Assembly: GCA_001179505.1 (NCBI GenBank)
Contig: CDMY01000265.1
Location: 78,455 to 142,454, forward strand
DNA length: 64,000 bases
DNA from: Vitrella brassicaformis CCMP3155
Lineage: Eukaryota > Protista > Chromerida
Direction: 5' to 3'
Notes under the pieces: model-generated
Told to the model about the DNA's origin: nothing
Seen by the model: the letters and a program-made list of their open reading frames with translations, nothing else
Database searches by the model: none
In this document: piece after piece, positions 11,366-64,000 of the stretch
Numbering within the stretch: the first letter of the stretch is position 1
Layout of the letters: every line of letters starts with the position of its first letter
Made by a program: the position numbers and the translations under genes

Positions 11366-12341
11366 TCAGATTCCGTTGTTGTATTTGGCGTTGGCGTGTT
11401 TGTTGTTGCACACCACGCTGGGGCCGCTGTTTTTGATTTTCTCCGCCTGCATCCACACGACACAGGAGAGTGATAGGTGGATGGATGGATAGATGCGTGC
11501 AGGAGGTGCACATATGAGTACCAGCACCGATGCCATCTTTTCAGCCACCGGAGCCCTTGCCATGGGCAACTCGTGCTCACGCAACGTCACACGCTGCAGT
11601 CGGGAGGTCTTGTTGCGGCTCACGCTCGCCGACGCACTGGCTGCAGCAGCCGACGATGAAGCACTCTTAGAGGCGTCGTGAGGCAGACCAACCTGCATGC
11701 ACAAAGAAAAGAGACGTCACATTTGTGTCCATTGGCTTGGGTATCGCTCGCTTCCGGATCCTCACCTTGCTGCCCGTGGTGTCGTTCTTTTTGTCCTGGT
11801 TCCCATTGCTGTCGTCCGGGGCCACCTGCCCACCACTGGCGGTCCACATGCGACGCACACTCGTCTCGTCCCGGACGGACCAGCCCACATGTGCATCGCT
11901 GCCGCTTGCACTGCTAGGCTCCTGCTGTGGGGCTGCTGCAGCACCCTGCTCTTGGTCCATGGCGCGGTTCCCCTGACCTCGAGCGGGACGTCGCCGGCAT
12001 GTGGGCTCTTTCTTGGTCTTGACGTACTCCTCTGTCATGGGCTGCGGCAGGGGCATCATATCGGGATTTTGAGCCCCCATCACGTAGGCGAACCGCATGA
12101 GGAAGAAAAATGCCTGGGGCCAGGCGTGGAAACTCTGCGGCATGATGACGGGAGGATAGTTGTCCTTGGTGACGGCGACAGAGACGAGATGAGACGATGT
12201 CGCAACGATGCGACTGTAACAGTTGAAAAGAGCGCTTGCAGTGCAAACTCGAAGCCGAATAAAGCTCTTGCGGACCTCTTCAGCGTTTTTCAGCGAGCTC
12301 AAAATGGGGGCCCTGGCCCCACTTCCGATCTCGGCATTCAA
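11366..12341 (-). CDS. Multi-exon hypothetical protein
   Basis: Long open exon 11720-12341 (MPQSFHAWPQAFFFLMRF...), then Ala/Ser-rich and terminal exons after cag acceptors; start uncertain. Confidence 0.55.
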
Positions 12342-12380
12342 CCCCTTCCCCGTCTTTATCTCCCCTGGGAATAGACCATC

Positions 12381-15300
12381 ATGAAGCCATTCATGTTCTG
12401 CATCGCCACTTTCTCCCTCGACCTGAGGCTTGTGTTGGGTCAGGCGGGGGATATCCCTGGCGCGAGGGAGCGCCTCGTCGGCCTCGAACCCCGTGTCCCA
12501 TCCTTCTTCCCACCCCGAGCTCCCTCACTCATCGACAGGACAGAAGGGGAAGATGCGGCAGCCAGTGTTCCCTGGGGAAGCGGTCTGTTGCAAACCACGG
12601 AGGAGGAGGTCCAGAAAATGGGCCAGTGGCCTTCAGTGGGAGCCATCCGTGTCAGCGAAACGGGAGGTATGTATGTATGCAACCACAAACAACCACAAAC
12701 ACACATTGATGTTTTGGTTGTGACGTCTTTGTGTTTGTGTGTGCGCATTCGCTCGCCATCAGCGGACTGGCGTGAGGCCATGAGGCCCCCCCCCTGGGCT
12801 TTTGATTCTTTCTTGAATGCAGCGCAATCAGGAGGGGAGGGGGAGAGGGAGGGCGTCGAGGTTGACCAGGACTTCGAGGGCCAGCTGCGCCGGGCCATCG
12901 TGCTGGGCACGCCCCTCAAGCTCGAGTATCTCATGCAGCTGGAGGACTTCCAAGGATATGACCCAGCTGTCCTTCCAAAAGTAGAGGAATATCTGCAGCT
13001 CGGTCAGTCGGTGGGGCCGTGCATGCATGCATGCGACACAAGGCAGGACGGCTCTGTGTGTTTTGTGTCTGTCCGATTCCTCAGTGGTGGCTAAATCACG
13101 TGCGGCGATTCGTGACGGGAGTTACCCTCCCGACAAGGTGTGGTCCTTCCTGGACTATGTGACAGTCCGTGCGGCTGAGAAAGCCCGGAACCTCCCGCCT
13201 TACTTTTTGAAGTCGGGAAGCATTGAGGAACAACTCAAGTTCGACAGCGACATGATCATCAAGGTATGACACACACTCTCACACTCTGTCTGTTCCAAGG
13301 GCGTGTTCGGATTCCCTCTTTATTTTGTGCCTACGCAGGACGGATTGGCTAAAGTGAAGAGCGTCCCATCCTCCTTCCCTGGAGCCAGCGTGGAGATGAA
13401 GGATCTTCTGGAAGTTGATCTTCTCGGGCTAGGTCCCAAAGGCTGGCTGCTCTATGCGCCGTCAGCTGTCTCCTTCGTGCCTGGCGAGAAGAGGACAGAA
13501 GACGACCTCACCAAACTCGTCAAGGTCATGCGCAGAGGACAATATACCAATAGAGAGCGGTGTGTGCATCTACGCATTTATCCCCTCTCTTTGTACATTT
13601 CAGGGGTCTCTCAAGACCAGGCAGCCCATCAAGAAGGAGGACCTGAAAGTGATCTATCCGGCGGTCGTCGACACCAAGTTGGAGCCCCTGCAGATGTTCA
13701 TCAACAACCAGGTGGGGGCCAAGTACGACGACGCCAAGACTGAATGGATGACCAAGATCACCAGTGAATACAAAGGCTATGGCGATGCGTTTGATGAGTT
13801 CGTCGCAAGAACGGCGGCCAAAGGTACACATAGGCGGATTGAGCATGGGAGGACACCATTGTTGACCGTTTCTTTTGGGTCTGTCAGAGTCGGAACTGTA
13901 TCTCAAGTATAGCGAGGAGCTCAAAGACCGACTCCTCAGCAGCGACCTGACAACGTACTTCGACAGCATCTCAAAGTCGCTGTTTGAAGACGCCAAGGCC
14001 CGCATCCCCACATGTGACCGATATAAGGACGGCTCCTTCGACAAGACCCTGTGCGAGCTCTTCTACCAGCAGACCTTCCCAAAACACAACAGCAGACGGC
14101 GCCTGCTGTATGACCCCAACAACCCCAGCCCCTCGACGGCTCCGGGGTTCATGTCCATCACCCAGCTGCAGGCAGAGCCCACAGCTGCGGCGATAAAGGC
14201 GAAGCCCATTCTGTTCGACGACCTGAAGCCTCTTGCGGACATGTACCAGAGGGATCCCGTGCCCAAGAAGATTGAGTACACTGACGCAGAGCTGCAGACA
14301 TTCCTCCGGACAGAGGTGGTGCCCTTCATGGCGGCCATGCAGAGGCTCGCCGACACCTACAACAGCATTCTGGCTGGCGGAGAGCACGTGTGTCTCCTGG
14401 CGGAGTGCAAAGACGAGAAATACCTGTTTGAGAAGCTCATGAGCGCCAAGGCCGTCGAGGGGTTCTACCTCTTGCAGCCAGCTGCTGCATACGAAAAGAG
14501 TAGGCAGGCGCTCAGACATAAATGAGAAAGACATGCGCCTTCTCATGTCTCTTTGTTATGTCTCTTTCATCTTGTGTCTTGTGTCTGTAGAGGTGACCCC
14601 CGAACTGGTTCTGTACCAGGATCGCTTGGCTCGGCAGCTCTACACTGAGGCCAAGGCCTACGCGGAAGACTTCCCCAAGAGGCCCTATTTGCCCAAGCGA
14701 CCCCCACAGGTCCCCGACCTCAACGCACTCACGGCCCTCAAGCAATTGGATGACCTTGCCAAATATCTCCTCGTGAGCGGCTCGACAATGCCTGTGAAAC
14801 CTGGTGTGCGCACGAAGGACATTCTCTGGCGTCTCTGTAATGATGTGCAGGATAAGCTGGTCAGCAAGGTCGATGTCGTCGCATCTGAGCTGCAGGCCTT
14901 CTTCAAGACGGCCCTTCCCAAAACCCTGCAAATCCTGCCGAGCTTCTACAAGGAGGTCAGGGCTGCATTCGAGCCGGTGCACGAGAAGCTCAAGGGCACC
15001 GACTACGGCAAGGCATTCGACAACTTCGTCGCATACGAGGCTGCCAAAAGTAAGGCGGACGTCGAGACACCAACACAGAAGAGGCAGAAGCAAGTGAAGT
15101 CTGCTGGTTGTCATTCAGTGACCCGCGAGTTCCGTCGCTACTTCGACACGGCAACTCTTGTCGACGAGGCGGTCCGCAGCAAGTATCTTAAGGAGGTGGC
15201 GGCTTCTATCGTCAAAGACGGCGAGCACCGGCTGCCGTCCATCGATCGCTACGACAAGGACTTCGACAAGAAGCTCTACACTCTGTTCCAGGAGGCCTTC

Positions 15301-18300
15301 AAGACAGGCTCCGTCATCACGGCATCGGTGTCCGTGCCGGCAGACTGTCCCCTCGACGATCCACTCTGCACGAGTGTATCCCAATTGCCCACAGTCAGTT
15401 TCCAAGACGTCAAGCCGGCCTGGGCGACCACAGCCCCAGACGACTGGACCCACTTCCTGGACAAATTTGCTGTTCCCTTTTTTGAGACCCTGCGGCTAAG
15501 CGGAGACAAGTATTACAAGGACGCGAGTGAGGAGAAGAAGAAGGTGTTCAGGGACTACCTTCCGACACTGGCGGTAAGGTAAGATTGGTGGCAGCGCTGC
15601 CTGCCCCTGCATCATCCATCCCCTGATCTCACCTGGTCTTTCCCATCAGGTCGATGGCTACTACCTGCTGATCAACGTCGCGCGGCAGCACACTTCGCCT
15701 GATCTCGGGGAAACACCCATCCGCCGGCGCCTGATGCTTCAAGCCACCCCCGAGCACCTGAGTGCAATGCAGGTGAGAGAGAAACAGGTGCACCTAAGTG
15801 GGTGAGTGTCGTGTGTTCTGCAGAAAACCACTGCGGAGGGGGCGGACCTGTATATTACTCAAGTACAGCCCCCCGAAGTGGTCACCCCCCCAGCCGCCCT
15901 GCTCACGGAATCCGAGCAACTCATTGTCAAGATGAGCAAGGAGGCTGTCGAGGCGGCCAAGCAGTACGGTGACGCTTTCGTCAAGCTGCCCCTGCTGCCG
16001 CCCCTGCTGCCCTGGGGCTACCTGCAGCCCGCCATCCCCAAGGCCCCAGCGGCCTTGCCATTCGTTCCCTCATACAAGCCATATGGCGCGGCATCTTTGG
16101 TCACAGAGGGGGAGTCGATGGTGGTATTCCCCACTCTACGGCAGATGACGCCGCCCAGCGTTGGGGTGCCGGTGTATGGCGGGTCGAGTGAGGCGGTCAA
16201 CATGGTGTTTGTCAGGGAGTATCGGGCCATCCTCTATACGAGGGAGAGGGAGGTCGACCTCACCGACGCGTGGCTACGGAAATTTGATGAGTTTAAGACA
16301 CTAACCAGAGAGGTGACAGTCTACGCCAACTCCTTCCTCAAGGCTGTCGCCGTCAAGGTACTTAGGCAGACGATATCAGATCTCTGTGGCGCTTTCGATA
16401 CTCTCGATTGATGCCATTCCTCTTATATCGTCAGGTGTACGCCAAGAGGCCTTCCTTCGACGGTGAGCAGTACAGCGCGTACGTCGATCTGGTCGCGATG
16501 TATGCTTACGGAGACCTCAGAAAGGTAGGTGCAGAGAGACAGAGACATGTACCAGATTCGCCCACTCACCCCGGCGATGTGATGTGCACTTATGGTATGT
16601 GAGCAGCTGATCGGCCACACGAGGGAGTACAGTGACCTGGGCAGCGACGAGGCAAGGAGGGGCATCGAGGACTACATTGACAACATCCTCTACCGCACAA
16701 GTACAAACTGCAGCACACAGGTTGCACATCGCCCATGCTTTCGTTCATGTGTGTCTGTGTCTGCGTGATTTTCTCAGCCGAGGAGCCCCACACTAACGTC
16801 ATGTGGATCCGCCCCGAGCTGCTGGGCGTCAGTCTATATCAGCTAGAGGAGTTCAAGAACCCGCAGTACACCGACTTTGAGAAGCTGGTGAAAGACACCA
16901 TCATCAAGGAGGACATCAAGTCTGAAGACGCGGACAAGGTGATCAGGGCGATGCCCGGGCCCATCGTGATGCCAGGTGACAGTGAGATGGGGCCCGACGT
17001 CTTCAGAGACAGAGCCACGGCATTCTTCGACGCCATTGCCAAGGAGCGCAGCAGGCTTGGGGCTGACCCAAAACGGCGGAGACTGCAGGCTGGAAGGGAC
17101 CCACTCGCTGTCGTGGTGAGCTGGATGGCGATCATTCACAGAGAGCGATCAATACCGGCTCATTGGCCCGCCCGTGTGTGTGTGTTCTGTGTGCTCAGGA
17201 CCACTATCTGGTGCGTCGAACGGAACGGGCGCTTCAGGCCCTGGCAGTCCCTATGCCTGCTTTTGTTCCGGGTGGCATCCCGGCTTCGCCACCTCTTTCA
17301 TCCCCCGAAGCGGGAGCCGCGGCCGCTCTCAAACTCCTCCAAGAGGCCGATATCTTCTCCACGCAGCAAGGGCAGCCCCAACCCGACATGCTGATCCCCG
17401 GCCTCGATGAGGGCCCTCCTCCGATGTTCGCACCACCTCAGGCCAGTCCCTTGCCGGGGCTGTTGGGTCCGCAGCAGACCGGCGTCCCTGCTCCCCCGCC
17501 CCCACCCACCCCACCTGTCGGCCCAGGTCCACCCCCAGATCCCCTTTCAGCCATGTCCCCCGCTGGTGCGACCCCCATGGCCGTGCCGCCCGCCCCAGGG
17601 GGACTGGTGATGGGGCCTCCGACCGACGCGCTGACACCGATCGAGACAGCCTTCATCGTGCAATTCTACCTGCAGCCATCATCAGGCGCGCCCCAGCCGC
17701 CGTTGGGGTGGGCCGGACCGGTTCCAAGCAAACTGGATGATTTCAACTGGTCGGGCAGGAAGCAGGAGCTGGGGCAGATGGTCGACGCATTCGTGGCCAC
17801 GGTTGCCACAAAGAAGGCCGAGGTAGGCATGGCGTGGCATGGCATTCGCGAGACATCCATCCATAGCGCGAGACGTGTGTCTGCCTGTCTCTCAATCGCT
17901 GCACAAATGTCTGCCCGTCTGTCTGTCTGCCCTGCAGTATGCTGCCCAGTATGCGGACGACCCCATGAGAGTGCAGACCTTCAACGACTGGCTTTACAGC
18001 CGCACACTCATCGAGGCCGGCCGCGTGGCAAGCTTCGTGCAAGGCGAGTCCGAGGGCTACATCGGCACCATAGCCGTGCAGAGATTCATCAAAGAACGGG
18101 TCAGTCGCCCGACTGGCCGGCCCGGCAATGCCTAGACAGAGACACGTCTCACCATGTCTCGTGTGGCTGGTGGGCGATGGTGTGCAGGCGGACAAAGTGT
18201 ACAACGAGGGTGTGCAGTTCATGGAGAGCTGGAGCACCCCCCTGTTCTCCACCAGCAGGCTCTTCTACAGCCAGCCCGATTGGCAGCAGGTCGACAACGG

Positions 18301-18382
18301 CCCCCCAGCACTCGGCCTGGAGGTCATCGCACAGTCGGCCGCAGAGCTGGGCGGAACCATCCAGGGGCTGTTGCCTGTATGA
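12381..18382 (+). CDS. Large (about 1,600 aa, about 15 exons) secreted hypothetical protein with degenerate internal repeats, Pro-rich linkers and RRRL motifs
   Basis: Leader MKPFMFCIATFSLDLRLVLG; the junctions I checked are GT-AG and keep the frame to TGA at 18380-18382; internal repeats YGDAFDEFVARTAAK/YGKAFDNFVAYEAAK and RIPTCDRYKDGSFDKTL/RLPSIDRYDKDFDKKL. Confidence 0.8.
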
Positions 18383-19248
18383 TGACATCCGATGATAGTC
18401 GTTAGGCAGCAATGTCTTTGCTCTTGTATGGCTCTGTGGGCCGCACCACGGTGTAAGCATTAAGCCGTCTTTGTTCGTTCGTCTTTCGGCTCTGTGGACG
18501 TGTGACACGAAGGGACGTTGCTTAAGCCACTTGCGCGTTCGTGTGTGTGTGTGTGCGTTTCACTTTGCTGACGGGTGCATATGTGCATATGTATGTGGCA
18601 ACATTTTCGGTAACATGTTCAAGTCAGTTCGGGGCAACAAAGTCTCTGCCTCCCCCTCCCTCCCTCCCGCCACCGCTTTTGCAAGAGGGAGTAGGTACTT
18701 GTTGGTGAAGAAGGTGTTGACGTACGAAATGAGCCATCGTCTGCCCACCTACAAGTACACCACCACCACGCCCACACCCACTTGCCCACCTGCGGCCAAC
18801 CCACACGCACGCATCACGCCAACCTGCCTACACCCATAGAAAATACCAATACGAGTGAGTATGCACATATACGGCCGAGACTGGATGACCTAATCAGTCA
18901 GCACGACAACCACACACACACATACATACCTACGTGTATACATACCTACATAGCTACAGAGGAGTGAGTGAGTGAGTGGGTCGTGTACGAATGCGAATAC
19001 ACGGGCGGCACATGCTCAGAATGACGCCATGCATGGCTGTCTGTCTGTCTGTCCATAGAGACGGGACGGAAAAACAAAGTCAGTCACTCAGCCCTCCATC
19101 CAGATCGATCATGTGTTGATCTTGGGCGGGGCGTAGGTGCCGTCGATCGCCTTCATGTACAGCTCCAGACGGGGGGAGAGAACCCTACCGAAGCCGTCTT
19201 CGGCTACCTGCGAACAATCAAACAGTGATCGGGTGAATTGTTCAGACA

Positions 19249-20572
19249 TCAGCCGCAAAGCAGCAGAGTTGTGCATACGCCTCTGGCCATCTCCAGGTAT
19301 GTCGTGTCGCTCCCCGGGGGGACTGTGGCCATCGTCAGCACCACGGCAAACACCAACACGGCCTCCTCGGCTGCATACCGACACAGACAGGTCGTGTGTG
19401 TCATGAATGGTCTGTCTGTCTGTCTGTCTGTGTCTATGTGGGTACTTCCGAACACAATGTAGCGCTGTCCATCGCCATGTGCGATCTGCTGCAGCACCGT
19501 CTCGACAGCAGGTGTAAGTTGTGCGAGTGGGGCGTCGGGAGGGCTGGGCAGCAGCACCATGTCGCCCACAACCTGTGGGACACCACACCCCAGACAAGCA
19601 TAGAAGTAAGCGCCTTCCTGCTCGCCTCGCACGCCCTACATACGTGTATGTTGCTGCTGCTGAGATTGATGTATGTGTAGGGCTTGACGGCTTTGTCTGG
19701 AGGGAAGACCGAGTCCACCTGACTCCACACACACGCACACCCACTTCCACACACACATGCATGCATTCGATGGTCGCTTGCTTCGGGTCTGACCACATTC
19801 AAGTACGGTGTGGAGATACAGAAGCACCAGCGGCCACCTTTGAGTTCGACAATGTGCATAGGGGTCCGCTGGGCAGACAACCTGCATGCCATGCAATTCA
19901 TGTGCAATAGATCAATGAGGCAGAAACACAGACAGACACGAGGCGCGCCCACTCACAAGTAGGTGTCCTGATACTGAGCGTGGCTCTTCTGCACAGCACA
20001 AACAGACAGAGGGGGAGGGACACACGACACCCAACCATTGCACACTCACCCACTCACCCACCGCCCTACCTGACGAATCTGTGCTGTGATGACGTCCTGC
20101 TGCTCCTCCTGCACACACACGCACGCCACCATCATCAGCACACCAGACCATGCAGCCCATTCGTGTCATCGCTTCTGTGCAGGCCGACCGGTGACAGGCC
20201 AGTGGGGATCGCCTGAGGCGACGTCGACTCGGGCTGCACAGACACAGAAACAAAGCGGCAAGGGAATCGCCTGTCCCATGCCCTCCCATGCGGCTCGTGA
20301 TCTTACTTCGGTCACCGGCTGTGCGGCCTGAGAGCAGCTCACACGTGCACCACGCACCACACAAACCACACACACCCACGTCAGCACACCCCGGCAGACA
20401 GACAGACAGACAGACAGACAGCCCGGCAACGTACAACAAGAAGGGACGGGAGGACGACTGGCTGACAGCCCGGCAACGTACAACAAGAAGGGACGGGAGG
20501 ACGACTGGCTGCGAGGCATCTGTGTACCTGGCTGGTGTCAGCAGCAGCGGCAGCAGCCTGCCTATTCCCCAT
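19249..20572 (-). CDS. Unknown N-Gly protein, family member A (many micro-exons)
   Basis: Exons MGNRQAAAAAADTSQ|AAQPVTE|PESTSPQAIPTGLSP|EEQQDVITAQIRQ|KSHAQYQDTYL|...CFCISTPYLNVV|VDSVFPPDKAVKPYTYINL|VVGDMV...RYIVFG|TEEAVLVFAVVL; matches the gene at 53.5-54.8 kb exon for exon. Confidence 0.7.
20418..20511. repeat. Perfect 2 x 47-bp tandem duplication in an intron
   Basis: acagcccggcaacgtacaacaagaagggacgggaggacgactggctg at 20418-20464 and 20465-20511. Confidence 0.95.
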
Positions 20573-20898
20573 TCCGTCCGAGAAACAAAACCCAATCGGA
20601 AACACGCGGAGGGGAGCCGCTCTAAGCCTTTTCGGCGGGTTCCTCGGTGCAATGGAGCGGAAAGAATTGCAATGGAATTGCAATGGAATGGTTTGGAAAG
20701 ATCCACATCACATTATCATCCATGCACACATGAAACGAAAAGGGACAGCACTGCAGCCACTGCAGGAAGCCAACCCATGCACCATGCGTTATCTACACAT
20801 GCCCCTCCCCTGCTGTGCTTCTTACTCAACCACGCACGCACGCACGCACATGGATCCGTCGGCTTCAACCAACTGTCCATCTGTGTGTGTGTGTCTAT

Positions 20899-59364: not shown

Positions 59365-62084
59365 GCAAGAATGGCGGCCAAAGGTACACATAGGCCGATT
59401 GACAATGGGAGGACACTGTTGCTGACCGTTTGTTTTGGGTCTGTCAGAGGCGGAACTGTATCTCAAGTATAGCGAGGAGCTCAAAGACCGACTCCTCAGC
59501 AGCGACCTGACCACGTACTTCGACAGCATCTCAATGTCGCTGTTTGAAGACGCCAAGGCCCGCATCCCCACATGCGACCGATCCAACCACGGCTCCTTCG
59601 ACAAGACCCTGTGCGGGCTCTTCTACTGGTAGACCTTCCCAAAAGACAACTGCAGACGGCGCCTGCTGTATGACCCCAACAACCCCAGCCCCTCGACGCC
59701 TTCGGGGTTCATGTCCATCACCCAGCTGCAGGCAGAGCCCACAGCTGCGGCGATAAAGCCGAAGCCCATCGTGTTTGACGACCTGAAGCCTCTTGCGGAC
59801 ATGTACCAGAGGGATCCCGTGCCCAAGAAGTTTGAGTACACTGACGCAGAGCTGGAGACATTCTTCCGGACAGAGGTGGTGCCCTTCATGGCGGCCATGC
59901 ACAAGCTCGCCGATACGTACAACAACATTCTGGCTGGCGGAGAGCACGCGTGTCTCGTGGCGGAGTGCAAAGACGGGAAATACCTGTTTGAGAAGCTCAT
60001 GAGCGCCAAGGCCGTCGAGGGGTTCTACCTCTTGCAGCCAGCTGCTGTATACGAATGGAGTAGGGAGGCGCTCAGACATAAGAGAGAGACATGCACATTG
60101 TCATGTCTCCTTGTCATGTCTATTTCATCTTGTGTCTTGTGTCTGTAGAGGTGACCCCCGAACTGGTTCTGTACCAGGATCGCTTGGCTCGGCAGCTCTA
60201 CACTGAGGCCAAGGCCTACGCGGAAGACTTCCCCAAGAGGCCCTATTTGCCCAAGCGACCCCCCCAGGTCCCCGACCTCAACGCACTCACGGTCCCCAAG
60301 CAATTGGATGAGCTCGCCAAATATCTCCTCGTGAGCGGCTTGATGATGGCTGTAAAATCCGGTGTGCGCACGAAGGACATTCTCTGGTGTCTCTGTAATG
60401 ATGTGCAGGATAAGCTGGTTAACAAGGTCGATGTCGTCGCATCAGAGTTGCAGGCCTTCTTCAAGACGGCCCTTCCCAAAACCCTGCAAATCCTGCCGGC
60501 TTCTACAACGAGGTCAGGGCTGCCTTCGAACCGGTGCACGAGAGGCTCAAGGGCACCGACTACGGCAAGGCATTCGACAACTTCGTCGCATACGAGGCTG
60601 CCAAAAGTAAGGCGGACGTCGAGACACCAACACAGAAGAGGCAGAAGCAAGTGAACTCTGCTGGTTGTCATTCAGTGACCCGCGAGTTCCGTCGCTACTT
60701 CGACACGGCAACCCTTGTCGACGAGGTGGTCCGCAGCAAGTATCTCAAGGAGGTGGCGGCTTCTATCGTCAAAGACGGCGAGCACCGGCTGCCGTCCATC
60801 GGTCGCTACGACAGGGACTCCGACAAGAAGCTCTACACTCTGTTCCAGGAGGCCTTCAAGACAGGCTCCGTCATCACGGCATCGGTGTCCGTGCCGGCAG
60901 ACTGTCCCCTCAACGATCCACTCTGCACGAGTGTATCCCAATTGCCCACAGTCAGTTTCCAAGACGTCAAGCCGGCCTGGGCAACCACAGCCCCAGACGA
61001 CTGGACCCACTTCCTGGACAAATTTGCTGTTCCCTTTTTTGAGACCCTGCGGCTAAGGGGAGACAAGTACTACAAGGACCCGAGTGAGGAGAAGAAGAAG
61101 GTGTTCAGGGACTATCTTCCGACACTGGCGGTAAGGTAAGATTGGTGGCACCGTTGCCCGCCCCTGCATCATCCCCTGATCTCACCTGGTCTGTCTCATC
61201 AGGTCGATAGCTACTACCTGCTGATCAACGTCGCGCGGCAGCACACTTCGCCTGAACCCGGGGAAACGCCCATCCGCCGGCGGCTGATGCTTCAGGCCAC
61301 CCCCGAGCACCTGAGTGCGATGCAGGTGAGAGAGACACAGCTGCATGTGTGTGGGTGAGAGTTGTGTGTTCTGCAGAAAACCACTGCGGAGGGGGCGGAC
61401 CTGTATATCACTCAAGTACAGCCCCCCGAAGTGGTCATCCCCCCAGCCGCCCTGCTCACGGAATCCGAGCAACTCATTGTCAAGATGAGCAAGGAGGCTG
61501 TCGAGGCGGCCAAACAGTACGGTGACGCCTTCGTCAAGCTGCCCTTGCTGCCGCCCCTGCTGCCCTGGGGCTACCTGCAGCCCGCCATCCCCAAGGCCCC
61601 AGCGGCCATGCCATTCATCCCCTCTTACAAGCCATATGGCGGGGCGGCTTTGGTCACAAAGGGGGAGTCGCTGGTGGTATTCCCCACTCTACGGCAGATG
61701 ACGCCGCCCAGCGTTGGGTTGCCGGCGTATGGCGGGTCGAGTGAGGTGGTCAACATGGTGTTTGTCAGGGAGTATCGGGCCATCCTGTATTCGAGGGAGA
61801 GGGAGGTCGACCTGACCGGCGCTTTGCCAGAGACACTGACTAGAGAGCTGACGGTCTACGCCAACTCCTTCCTCAAGGCTGTCGCCGTCAAGGTACTTAT
61901 ACAGACGAACTCTCTGTGGCTGGCAGTTTCTTTCCATACTCTCTCTCGATGCCATTCCTCTTATATCGTCAGGTGTCTGCCAAGAGGCCTTCCTTCGACG
62001 TTGAGCAGTACAGCGCGTATGTCGATCTGGTCGCGATGTATGCTTACGGAGACCTCAGACAGGTAGGTGCAGAGAGACAGAGAC
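59365..62084 (+). pseudogene. Pseudogenised 2.7-kb partial duplicate of the secreted repeat-protein gene (source about 13805-16546)
   Basis: Colinear exon and intron similarity; CAG>TAG stop at 59630-59632, 1-nt deletion near 60499, net 18-nt in-frame loss near 61820; both gene ends missing. Confidence 0.92.
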
Positions 62085-62950: not shown

Positions 62951-64000
62951 GAATGAGCAAGCTGGGGGGTCTGTCTAACGCAGAAAATGGGTTTACTGGT
63001 ATAGCAAGCAACTGGCTGGCGACAGAGTGTTAGTGCGCTAGGGACCGACCCACTCACACACACAAGCTGCCTCGATTGTAGGTGTGCAGTGGATCGGTTA
63101 GGCTGACCGGGTGAGTGGGGGCGGGGATAAGGGGGAGGGCGGTCAACTGGCTCACCACACAGTGACTTCCGCCGCCAGATGCCACGGCACTGGCTGGCTG
63201 GGGTCTGGCTGGTTGGTTGACTGGCTCCCTGCCCACCCATTCTATAAACACATACATGCTGTTCGCGACCTCATTTTCTCTCCCCTGCATACCCTACGTA
63301 CATGTCAGGCCTGGTCATCTGCCAGAGACACACAGAGGCACACAGGTCATCTGCACGCACTGACACGGGAGGCATTCCTCCGTTTTCATGTCTCTATGTG
63401 TTTTTGTGTGCAGCGGACCCAGATGGCAGTTCTCACAGTACGGACAGACAGCGGATGTGTATCGCCAGAAGTCGCACATGCCCTTTTTGGTGTGGTGTGG
63501 TGTGCCGTTGGTTGTGCGTACGATCATCTCAGCACATGGAGAGTTTCCGTTTCCACCGATGTCATCTTGTGACCAGGCCACTGACACTTGTACTGACAAA
63601 GGTATGTATATGCCTATGTACACACGACCCGCACACAATCTGACTAGTGTGCAGCTGATGTGTCAATGCTGCGTCTTGGTCCAGGACATTGTGTCCGTGA
63701 GGCAATGAAGGAAAAATGATCCAGCGAGAGACACAGAGACACACAAAGGTGATATATCACGACTTACAAGCTTTTCTTTCTCCCCTTCATAAGTAAGCCG
63801 TGCATGTGTATGCATGTACAGATGCGCCGAATGGAGTATCCCAGTGAATGTACGGAAGGAGAGCAGAGCAGCGTGAGTGTGAATGTCTTTCATGCTTCTG
63901 TGCCAATGCACAGGACACGCACGTCAAACTGCCACTTTCGCACACCACCTCCGCGAGCAAGCGAATGATGTTCCACGGAAGGTAGGCGCGTGATTTGATT

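Follow-up and report, generated by a model that had tools for sequence, protein, structure and literature searches.

Plasmodium MSP1 is a large, largely helical protein (about 1,600–1,700 amino acids, aa) that carries a signal peptide and, once secreted, is cleaved into several fragments. Among alveolates, the trichocyst matrix proteins of Paramecium and the Grl proteins of Tetrahymena form multigene families; they are secretory precursors, acidic and helical, from which proteolysis yields structural subunits; ciliate extrusome matrix precursors of this kind measure about 40–60 kDa. Chromerids, to which the coral-associated alga Vitrella brassicaformis belongs, are the closest free-living relatives of the apicomplexans, have secretory organelles in common with them, and serve as a reference for the abilities of the ancestor of malaria parasites and Toxoplasma. 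Toxoplasma ASP5 is reported to cleave RRL in dense-granule proteins, at N- and C-terminal positions alike (PMC4764566), and a tree of aspartyl proteases takes in Vitrella sequences (PMC8540915). Here we describe gene A, which lies at 12381–18382 on the plus strand of a 64,000-nt stretch of the V. brassicaformis CCMP3155 genome (the window; C265:78455-142454), and the family to which it belongs. Its 1,572-aa product (GenBank CEL98214.1, UniProt A0A0G4EMK9; P0006 below) is listed as "uncharacterized". It contains duplicated, apparently helical modules and RRL motifs whose conservation across paralogues suggests proteolytic maturation.

Gene A is one expressed gene

Gene A is a single gene of 17 exons. 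Its GT–AG splice model, drawn by hand from the sequence and from paralogue conservation and consistent in its phases, gives a protein identical to the one in the genome annotation (CEL98214.1). A transcriptome-derived UniRef protein (A0A7S1NZW7, P0005) contains all exon translations in order together with all predicted split-codon residues, and the transcript contig L024 (6,467 nt, JGI 3300017297) carries an unbroken 1,572-codon frame and aligns at 100% to the 17 exons, starting from 12339. Since P0005, annotation and transcript, three independent sources, agree, gene A is one expressed gene. Bases 1–42 of L024, also matching at 100%, give the 5' untranslated region (UTR) as far as the contig reaches (12339..12380, plus strand), and the ATG at 12381 is immediately preceded by a stop codon in frame. 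In what follows, exons were searched one by one, and full-length analyses used the public proteins P0002, P0004, P0005 and P0006.

The raw plus-strand frames over 12300–18500 are split into many open pieces, the usual picture for an intron-containing eukaryotic gene; the introns here measure 51–115 nt. Three of the introns (12667–12762, 14773–14850 and 15050–15118) are free of stops and divisible by three in length, and a reading based on open reading frames (ORFs) adds 32, 26 and 23 false residues there. The original prediction, made from the letters alone, had proposed a secreted repeat protein of roughly 1,600 aa; it was right in seeing one protein. Reading the raw frame through these three open introns would yield about 1,620 aa instead of the true 1,572. 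The scattered raw frames were the one point in favour of a gene-model artefact, with several genes or a non-coding stretch taken as one protein, and nothing now speaks for it. That explanation is already refuted by the full-length spliced transcript; every intron moreover has GT–AG borders and consistent phases, and gene A is collinear with three paralogous loci, those of a 1,545-aa and a 1,493-aa protein among them. We accord the artefact practically no probability, and the single gene that had been predicted stands.

L024 extends past the stop of gene A to 19576 and continues in spliced pieces at 19632-19719, 19792-19881, 19955-19991, 20070-20109 and 20188-20233. This downstream part (18383-20233, plus strand) overlaps minus-strand ORFs at 19109-19798 and 19912-20706, and represents one of two things: a long 3' UTR that overlaps a gene of convergent orientation, or two convergent transcripts joined in a chimeric assembly.

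A gene family in Vitrella

The genome searched (72.7 Mb in 1,064 contigs) holds four full loci, gene A and those on C303, C613 and C293, and further one degenerate partial copy. The paralogous proteins are CEM00975.1 (1,545 aa), P0004 (1,493 aa) and CEL99986.1 (annotated at 838 aa), all of them labelled "unnamed protein product" or "uncharacterized protein", and tblastn with P0002 and P0004 covered 12786-18352 of the window in order. Gene A is 43–47% identical to its paralogues (43% across an alignment of over 1,400 residues), which are 63–81% identical among themselves; by these values it is the most divergent member of the family. Gene A, collinear with these paralogues over its full length, shares with them the position of the putative signal peptide, the N-terminal domain, the four invariant cysteines, modules 1 and 2, and the RRL motif at two of the places discussed below (sites 1 and 3). 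Gene A differs from the others in a strongly proline-rich linker where they have a Gly/Leu/Ala-rich stretch, in an additional RRRL insertion after module 2, and in a weaker signal-peptide-like N-terminus. The CEL99986.1 locus (C293, about 60000-79000) is collinear with gene A in tblastx up to the equivalent of window position 18072, and because the collinearity runs that far the public model is probably truncated and the locus full length. A head-to-head partner gene shared by the family was considered and rejected: comparison of the 3 kb preceding each of the four loci showed nothing in common.

The window also contains copy B (59365..62084, plus strand), recognized by DNA alignment as a partial duplicate of gene A positions 13805-16546, a segment that begins at the end of exon 5 and extends as far as exon 10. 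Introns included, the two DNA sequences are 93.4% identical, and copy B is without the 5' and 3' portions of gene A. Its defects are a TAG at 59630, the loss of 1 nt opposite gene A position 14941 and deletions totalling 18 nt in the equivalent of exon 9, and the ratio of nonsynonymous to synonymous substitution rates in the equivalent of exon 6 is about 1. Copy B is probably a pseudogene. It is annotated as CEL98229.1 (684 aa) by way of splices that skip the defects, and the contig ends at window position 64000, beyond the copy.

Internal modules and linkers

Residues of modules and blocks are numbered here as in P0005 (add 18 for the full protein P0006), and all features of gene A lie on the plus strand. 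The protein is laid out as a conserved N-terminal domain of about 280 aa, modules 1 and 2 of about 300 aa each, a degenerate module 3 and a C-terminal region. Exon 1 (12381..12666; splice model and transcript) holds the start codon. The N-terminal domain includes exon 2 (12763..13002), which has GT–AG borders, appears in the transcript and translates to an exact substring of P0005, and exon 3 (13085..13263), the best-conserved exon with 76% identity to CEM00975.1; it ends in exon 4 (13339..13524). Module 1 starts in exon 5 (13604..13823), and exons 3, 4 and 5 are each supported by splice model, P0005 and transcript. The rest of module 1 is encoded by exon 6 (13888..14499; P0005 and paralogue alignment), which contains four family-invariant cysteines.

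The original prediction had described four recurring blocks, (a) to (d), and every peptide it quoted is present in the encoded protein. The quoted copies number four for block (a) (338, 669, 1067 and 1419), three for block (c) (491, 796 and 1191), and two each for block (b) (391 and 721) and block (d) (541 and 835). In module 1, block (a) reads YGDAFDEFVARTAAK and lies in exon 5, and blocks (b), (c) and (d) follow in exon 6. Module 2 is spread over four exons, for all of which P0005 and the transcript agree: exon 7a (14591..14772) opens it with a helix followed by the proline-rich motif FPKRPYLPKRPP, exon 7b (14851..15049) brings block (a) as YGKAFDNFVAYEAAK, exon 7c (15119..15573) blocks (b) and (c), and exon 8 (15650..15772) ends it with block (d), AVDGYYLL.

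BLASTP among the exon translations links exons 5 and 6 to exon 7 with expect values (E) of 1e-3 and 2.5e-5. When the family alignment was used in hhalign, module 1 (280-556) matched module 2 (557-876) over 217 columns with a probability of 97%, E of 1.2e-10 and a score of 76.6, against 32.2 for the best of 25 reversed controls and about 21 for the best column shuffle. Within this alignment, blocks (a) to (d) pair up in order and in register, first copy with second. Modules 1 and 2 are clearly homologous on this evidence, and the profile comparison bears out the significance of the self-alignment that the original prediction had put at stake. Self-BLASTP of the paralogues gave no off-diagonal match, so that the repeat is visible only in gene A by BLASTP, or with profiles. 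Because modules 1 and 2 occur in every paralogue, the internal duplication predates the gene family.

The third module is more degenerate. It starts in exon 9 (15824..16357; P0005, tblastn, hhalign and transcript), where a helix and a KLPLLPPLLP motif appear again, continues through exons 10 (16435..16524) and 11 (16607..16700), and ends in exon 12 (16778..17115), these three exons being supported by splice model, P0005 and transcript. In hhalign, module 3 (877-1228) matched module 2 with E of 1.3e-4 to 6.7e-6 and a score of 39–45, varying with the segment cuts; most of the signal comes from the helix that opens the module, with its F/xKLPxLPP motif, and from the RRRL stretch at the end. A third, degenerate module is thus probable. 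The third copies of blocks (a) and (c) that had been proposed, YSAYVDLVAMYAY and FRDRATAFFDAI, did not hold up: they lie within the chance range in shuffles and out of register in hhalign. The fourth copy of block (a), LGQMVDAFVATVATK, fared better. It is encoded in exon 13 (17199..17822; P0005, transcript and shuffles) after a proline-rich linker. When the C-terminal 678 residues were shuffled 300 times, no shuffle came above 46, against its score of 57; a match resembling block (c), lying 82 residues further downstream, ranks at about the 95th to 97th percentile. Because the fourth block (a) beats all shuffles, the C-terminus may keep a remnant of a module. The N-terminal domain was tried as a further module and rejected: its scores against module 2 or M4 (30–33) exceed a first set of controls (maximum 26) and lie inside the range of the second (32.2). 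The prediction of two clear and up to four repeats thus comes out as two clear modules, a probable third and a fourth present as a remnant only.

The proline-rich linkers between modules were also correctly foreseen. Proline makes up 14.3% of residues 895-1020 and 26.5% of residues 1255-1420, against 9.0% of the whole protein; the corresponding DNA lies at about 15824-16200 in exon 9 and about 17223-17720 in exon 13. The C-terminal domain follows in exon 14 (17938..18099; splice model, P0005 and transcript) and in the 17th and last exon ("exon 15" in the 7a/7b/7c numbering; 18188..18382; P0005 and transcript), which ends with the TGA stop at 18380-18382.

A putative signal peptide

The protein of gene A has a mass of about 175 kDa, an isoelectric point of 5.1, 9% proline, seven cysteines and one N-glycosylation sequon. 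It begins with MK and a 10-residue hydrophobic core, and a putative 20-aa signal peptide (12381-12440), proposed from the paralogue N-termini, ends in VLG before a glutamine. The three paralogues have clearly hydrophobic N-termini (Kyte-Doolittle 1.8–2.4) that end with alanine before glutamine at the homologous place. In the remainder of the gene A protein no other Kyte-Doolittle window rises above 1.6, and its C-terminus has neither a KDEL-type retention signal nor a tail of the glycosylphosphatidylinositol (GPI) type. The strongly hydrophobic paralogue N-termini, the four cysteines of module 1 that are invariant across the family, and the acidic stretch after the predicted cleavage point together suggest a secretory route. 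Plastid targeting was considered and discarded, as the acidic region after the signal peptide makes a transit peptide unlikely.

If the N-terminal stretch were no signal peptide, the product could be a cytosolic or cytoskeletal helical repeat protein. The N-terminus of gene A indeed falls below the 19-residue hydropathy threshold, and the LPxLPPxxP-type motifs may resemble cytosolic SH3- or profilin-binding sites. Set against this are the three paralogues, whose N-termini look like classic signal peptides with a small residue at −1 and glutamine at +1 in homologous position, and the cysteine pairs conserved in module 1. We consider a non-secreted protein very improbable.

P0006, P0002 and P0004 contain 1, 0 and 0 N-glycosylation sequons in about 1,500 residues each, despite apparent passage through the endoplasmic reticulum (ER); low asparagine usage or selection against glycosylation may account for this scarcity. 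Ser-Pro3-5 repeats, a mark of extensins and hydroxyproline-rich wall glycoproteins, were looked for in the same three proteins, and SPPP occurs 0 times.

Conserved RRL motifs

RRRL occurs at residues 440, 878 and 1233 of P0006 (RRL at 441, 879 and 1234), that is, three times where about 0.02 occurrences are expected from composition. Site 1 lies in exon 6 (14094-14105), site 2 in exon 8 (15722-15733) and site 3 in exon 12 (17074-17085). Site 1 is invariant as RRRL[LM]YDP in all four genes, which are only 43% identical overall, and it opens a non-helical, low-confidence, loop-like insertion of about 45 residues, rich in proline, serine and lysine, that is missing from module 2. At site 3, RRLQ is kept in both full-length paralogues while the flanks differ, and site 2 sits in an insertion shared only by copies A and B. 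The conservation of RRL across paralogues suggests proteolytic maturation. Since leucine follows Arg-Arg in every instance, we infer that recognition of the RxL type, such as is reported for Toxoplasma ASP5 (PMC4764566), fits better than a plain dibasic site. The strict Plasmodium export element (PEXEL) pattern RxLx[EQD] is found at site 1 of gene A only and is not conserved.

A different account of the same motifs is that the protein is secreted and never cut, with RRL playing a structural or binding part in an intact, large, soluble or luminal scaffold. The placement of the three motifs at positions that are not equivalent between modules, and of site 2 in an insertion that only copies A and B have, would suit such a scaffold. 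It would account less readily for RRL being kept at site 3 despite diverging flanks, for an invariant site 1 at the start of a loop-like Pro/Ser/Lys-rich insertion, or for three RRRL in one protein, far above chance. An uncleaved scaffold seems to us distinctly unlikely.

Relatives and structural models

When a profile of exon 6, built from four paralogues, was searched against 1.84 billion representative proteins, all three matches came from Vitrella. Word searches that started from CEM00975.1 or from the family profile likewise returned Vitrella proteins only, and a scan of metagenome contigs with the exon 6 profile gave no relative. The word search with the 323-aa exon 7 read-through, which includes 49 intron-derived residues, found nothing, partly because of its length window; a feature-based search of the ESM Atlas showed low recognition for the same read-through and no usable match for the full protein. 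By these searches, which had full HMMER sensitivity for exon 6 and the sensitivity of word searches for the other domains, the family is restricted to V. brassicaformis, being detected in no other organism. In Pfam, neither the exon translations nor the full proteins matched a family at E <= 1 except for a chance match to DUF2524 (E 0.07), and PDB sequence profiles yielded chance matches only (E > 0.6). A literature search for the accession numbers brought up no relevant paper, and one on the Vitrella secretome or wall yielded nothing specific.

AlphaFold2 models were made of residues 22–815 and 816–1545 of CEM00975.1 with the family as alignment. Their mean predicted local distance difference test (pLDDT) scores are 43 and 51, the best-modelled parts being a helical bundle at the C-terminus and portions of the modules, and DSSP assigned only helices in both; the modules are apparently helical. 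Fold searches used the second model, as the first was too poor. Foldseek gave no match in the PDB at E <= 0.001, a shape search of the ESM Atlas stayed at template modelling (TM) scores <= 0.3, and a wide VIA-align search brought up generic helical bundles with Z <= 10, which is below a meaningful level for helical models. These fold searches are uninformative because the models are of low confidence.

Altogether, the observation behind the original prediction is confirmed and its interpretation supported, the helical character being tentative at the low pLDDT of the models and the structural or effector role putative. It had named three findings that would speak against it, namely several separate genes, an insignificant self-alignment and a match of the modules to a known family, and none of the three was found: the modules match nothing in Pfam, PDB sequences or proteins outside Vitrella. 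Its description of an undescribed system is apt for the family and its function, and too generous for the sequence, which was already public as an uncharacterized protein.

A candidate precursor of matrix or wall material

The explanation we favour, and to which we give about an even chance, is that gene A encodes a secreted or compartment-filling, non-enzymatic matrix or wall precursor that is matured by cleavage at RRL. The protein would enter the ER and then leave the cell or fill a secretory compartment, where it would act as a building block of matrix or wall. Cleavage at the conserved RRL sites would yield pieces of roughly 440, 440, 355 and 340 residues in the gene A copy. A non-enzymatic, all-alpha nature is suggested by the lack of sequence matches in Pfam and PDB together with the helices-only DSSP assignment.

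Several points weigh against this explanation. The N-terminus of gene A is less hydrophobic than those of its paralogues and has aspartate and arginine after the core. RRL sites 1–3 lie at non-equivalent places of the modules; only sites 2 and 3 align, at module ends. The low pLDDT values weaken the case for a helical fold and for exposed RRL sites alike, and with seven cysteines, almost no sequons and no Ser-Pro3-5 the protein is unlike all classic types of wall protein. Finally, the HMMER-level search covered the exon 6 profile, the other domains being covered by the less sensitive word method.

The main rival to the wall or matrix reading places the protein in a regulated secretory organelle (of microneme, rhoptry, dense-granule or extrusome type), as cargo that zoospores or settling cells would discharge as an adhesive or effector. 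That chromerids share the secretory organelles of apicomplexans is established knowledge and speaks for such cargo, as do the fast evolution of the family, its expansion in one lineage and the decaying copy B, which fits birth-and-death turnover. RRL is, according to PMC4764566, the motif that ASP5 cuts in dense-granule proteins of Toxoplasma, which points the same way. Against these stand the exon 6 profile search and the word searches, which found no homologue in any apicomplexan or other alveolate, and Pfam, which showed no adhesive domain typical of micronemal proteins. We regard organelle cargo as unlikely, and the present evidence cannot separate it from the wall or matrix reading.

Whichever compartment is concerned, a secreted multigene family without relatives indicates how much of the extracellular biology of Vitrella, from the laminated wall and the sporangia to the contact with corals, is yet to be explored. 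Protist genomes commonly encode orphan secreted repeat proteins, and the present status of this one is that of a well-defined orphan family, not of a demonstrated new mechanism. Its conserved RRL motifs make it a concrete substrate for asking if processing of the type of PEXEL and its Toxoplasma counterpart (TEXEL) preceded parasitism.

Comparison with known systems

The gene A protein resembles the TEXEL and PEXEL substrates of the Golgi/ER aspartyl proteases ASP5 in Toxoplasma and plasmepsin V in Plasmodium in being a secretory-type protein with RRL, here far from the N-terminus. It differs from them in that it has no sequence homology to any known substrate, its motif is known from sequence and its cleavage is putative. 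An ambitious form of the preferred explanation would make it a polyprotein-like precursor, cut at RRL in a free-living chromerid by a clade-D aspartyl protease of the ASP5/plasmepsin V type into helical subunits of about 40 kDa for the cell or sporangial wall or for an organelle matrix. This is a doubtful proposal in its full form; if true, RRL-directed maturation of secreted proteins would be older than parasitism in the apicomplexan lineage, with a role in ordinary secretion that came before the one in host-cell export.

Two further systems offer partial parallels. MSP1 of Plasmodium is large, as is the gene A protein, and has the helical character and signal peptide that the latter appears to have, and its cleavage would find a counterpart in the putative processing here; this is an analogy at most, as the gene A protein has no Pfam match to MSP1 or to epidermal growth factor (EGF) domains, no hydrophobic C-terminus of the GPI type and no sequence similarity to MSP1. 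From the ciliate extrusome matrix precursors it differs in its far larger size (about 175 kDa) and in showing no similarity to them in any search. With those precursors it nevertheless shares a multigene and acidic, apparently also a helical and secretory character, to which maturation by proteolysis would be added if the putative cleavage at RRL takes place.

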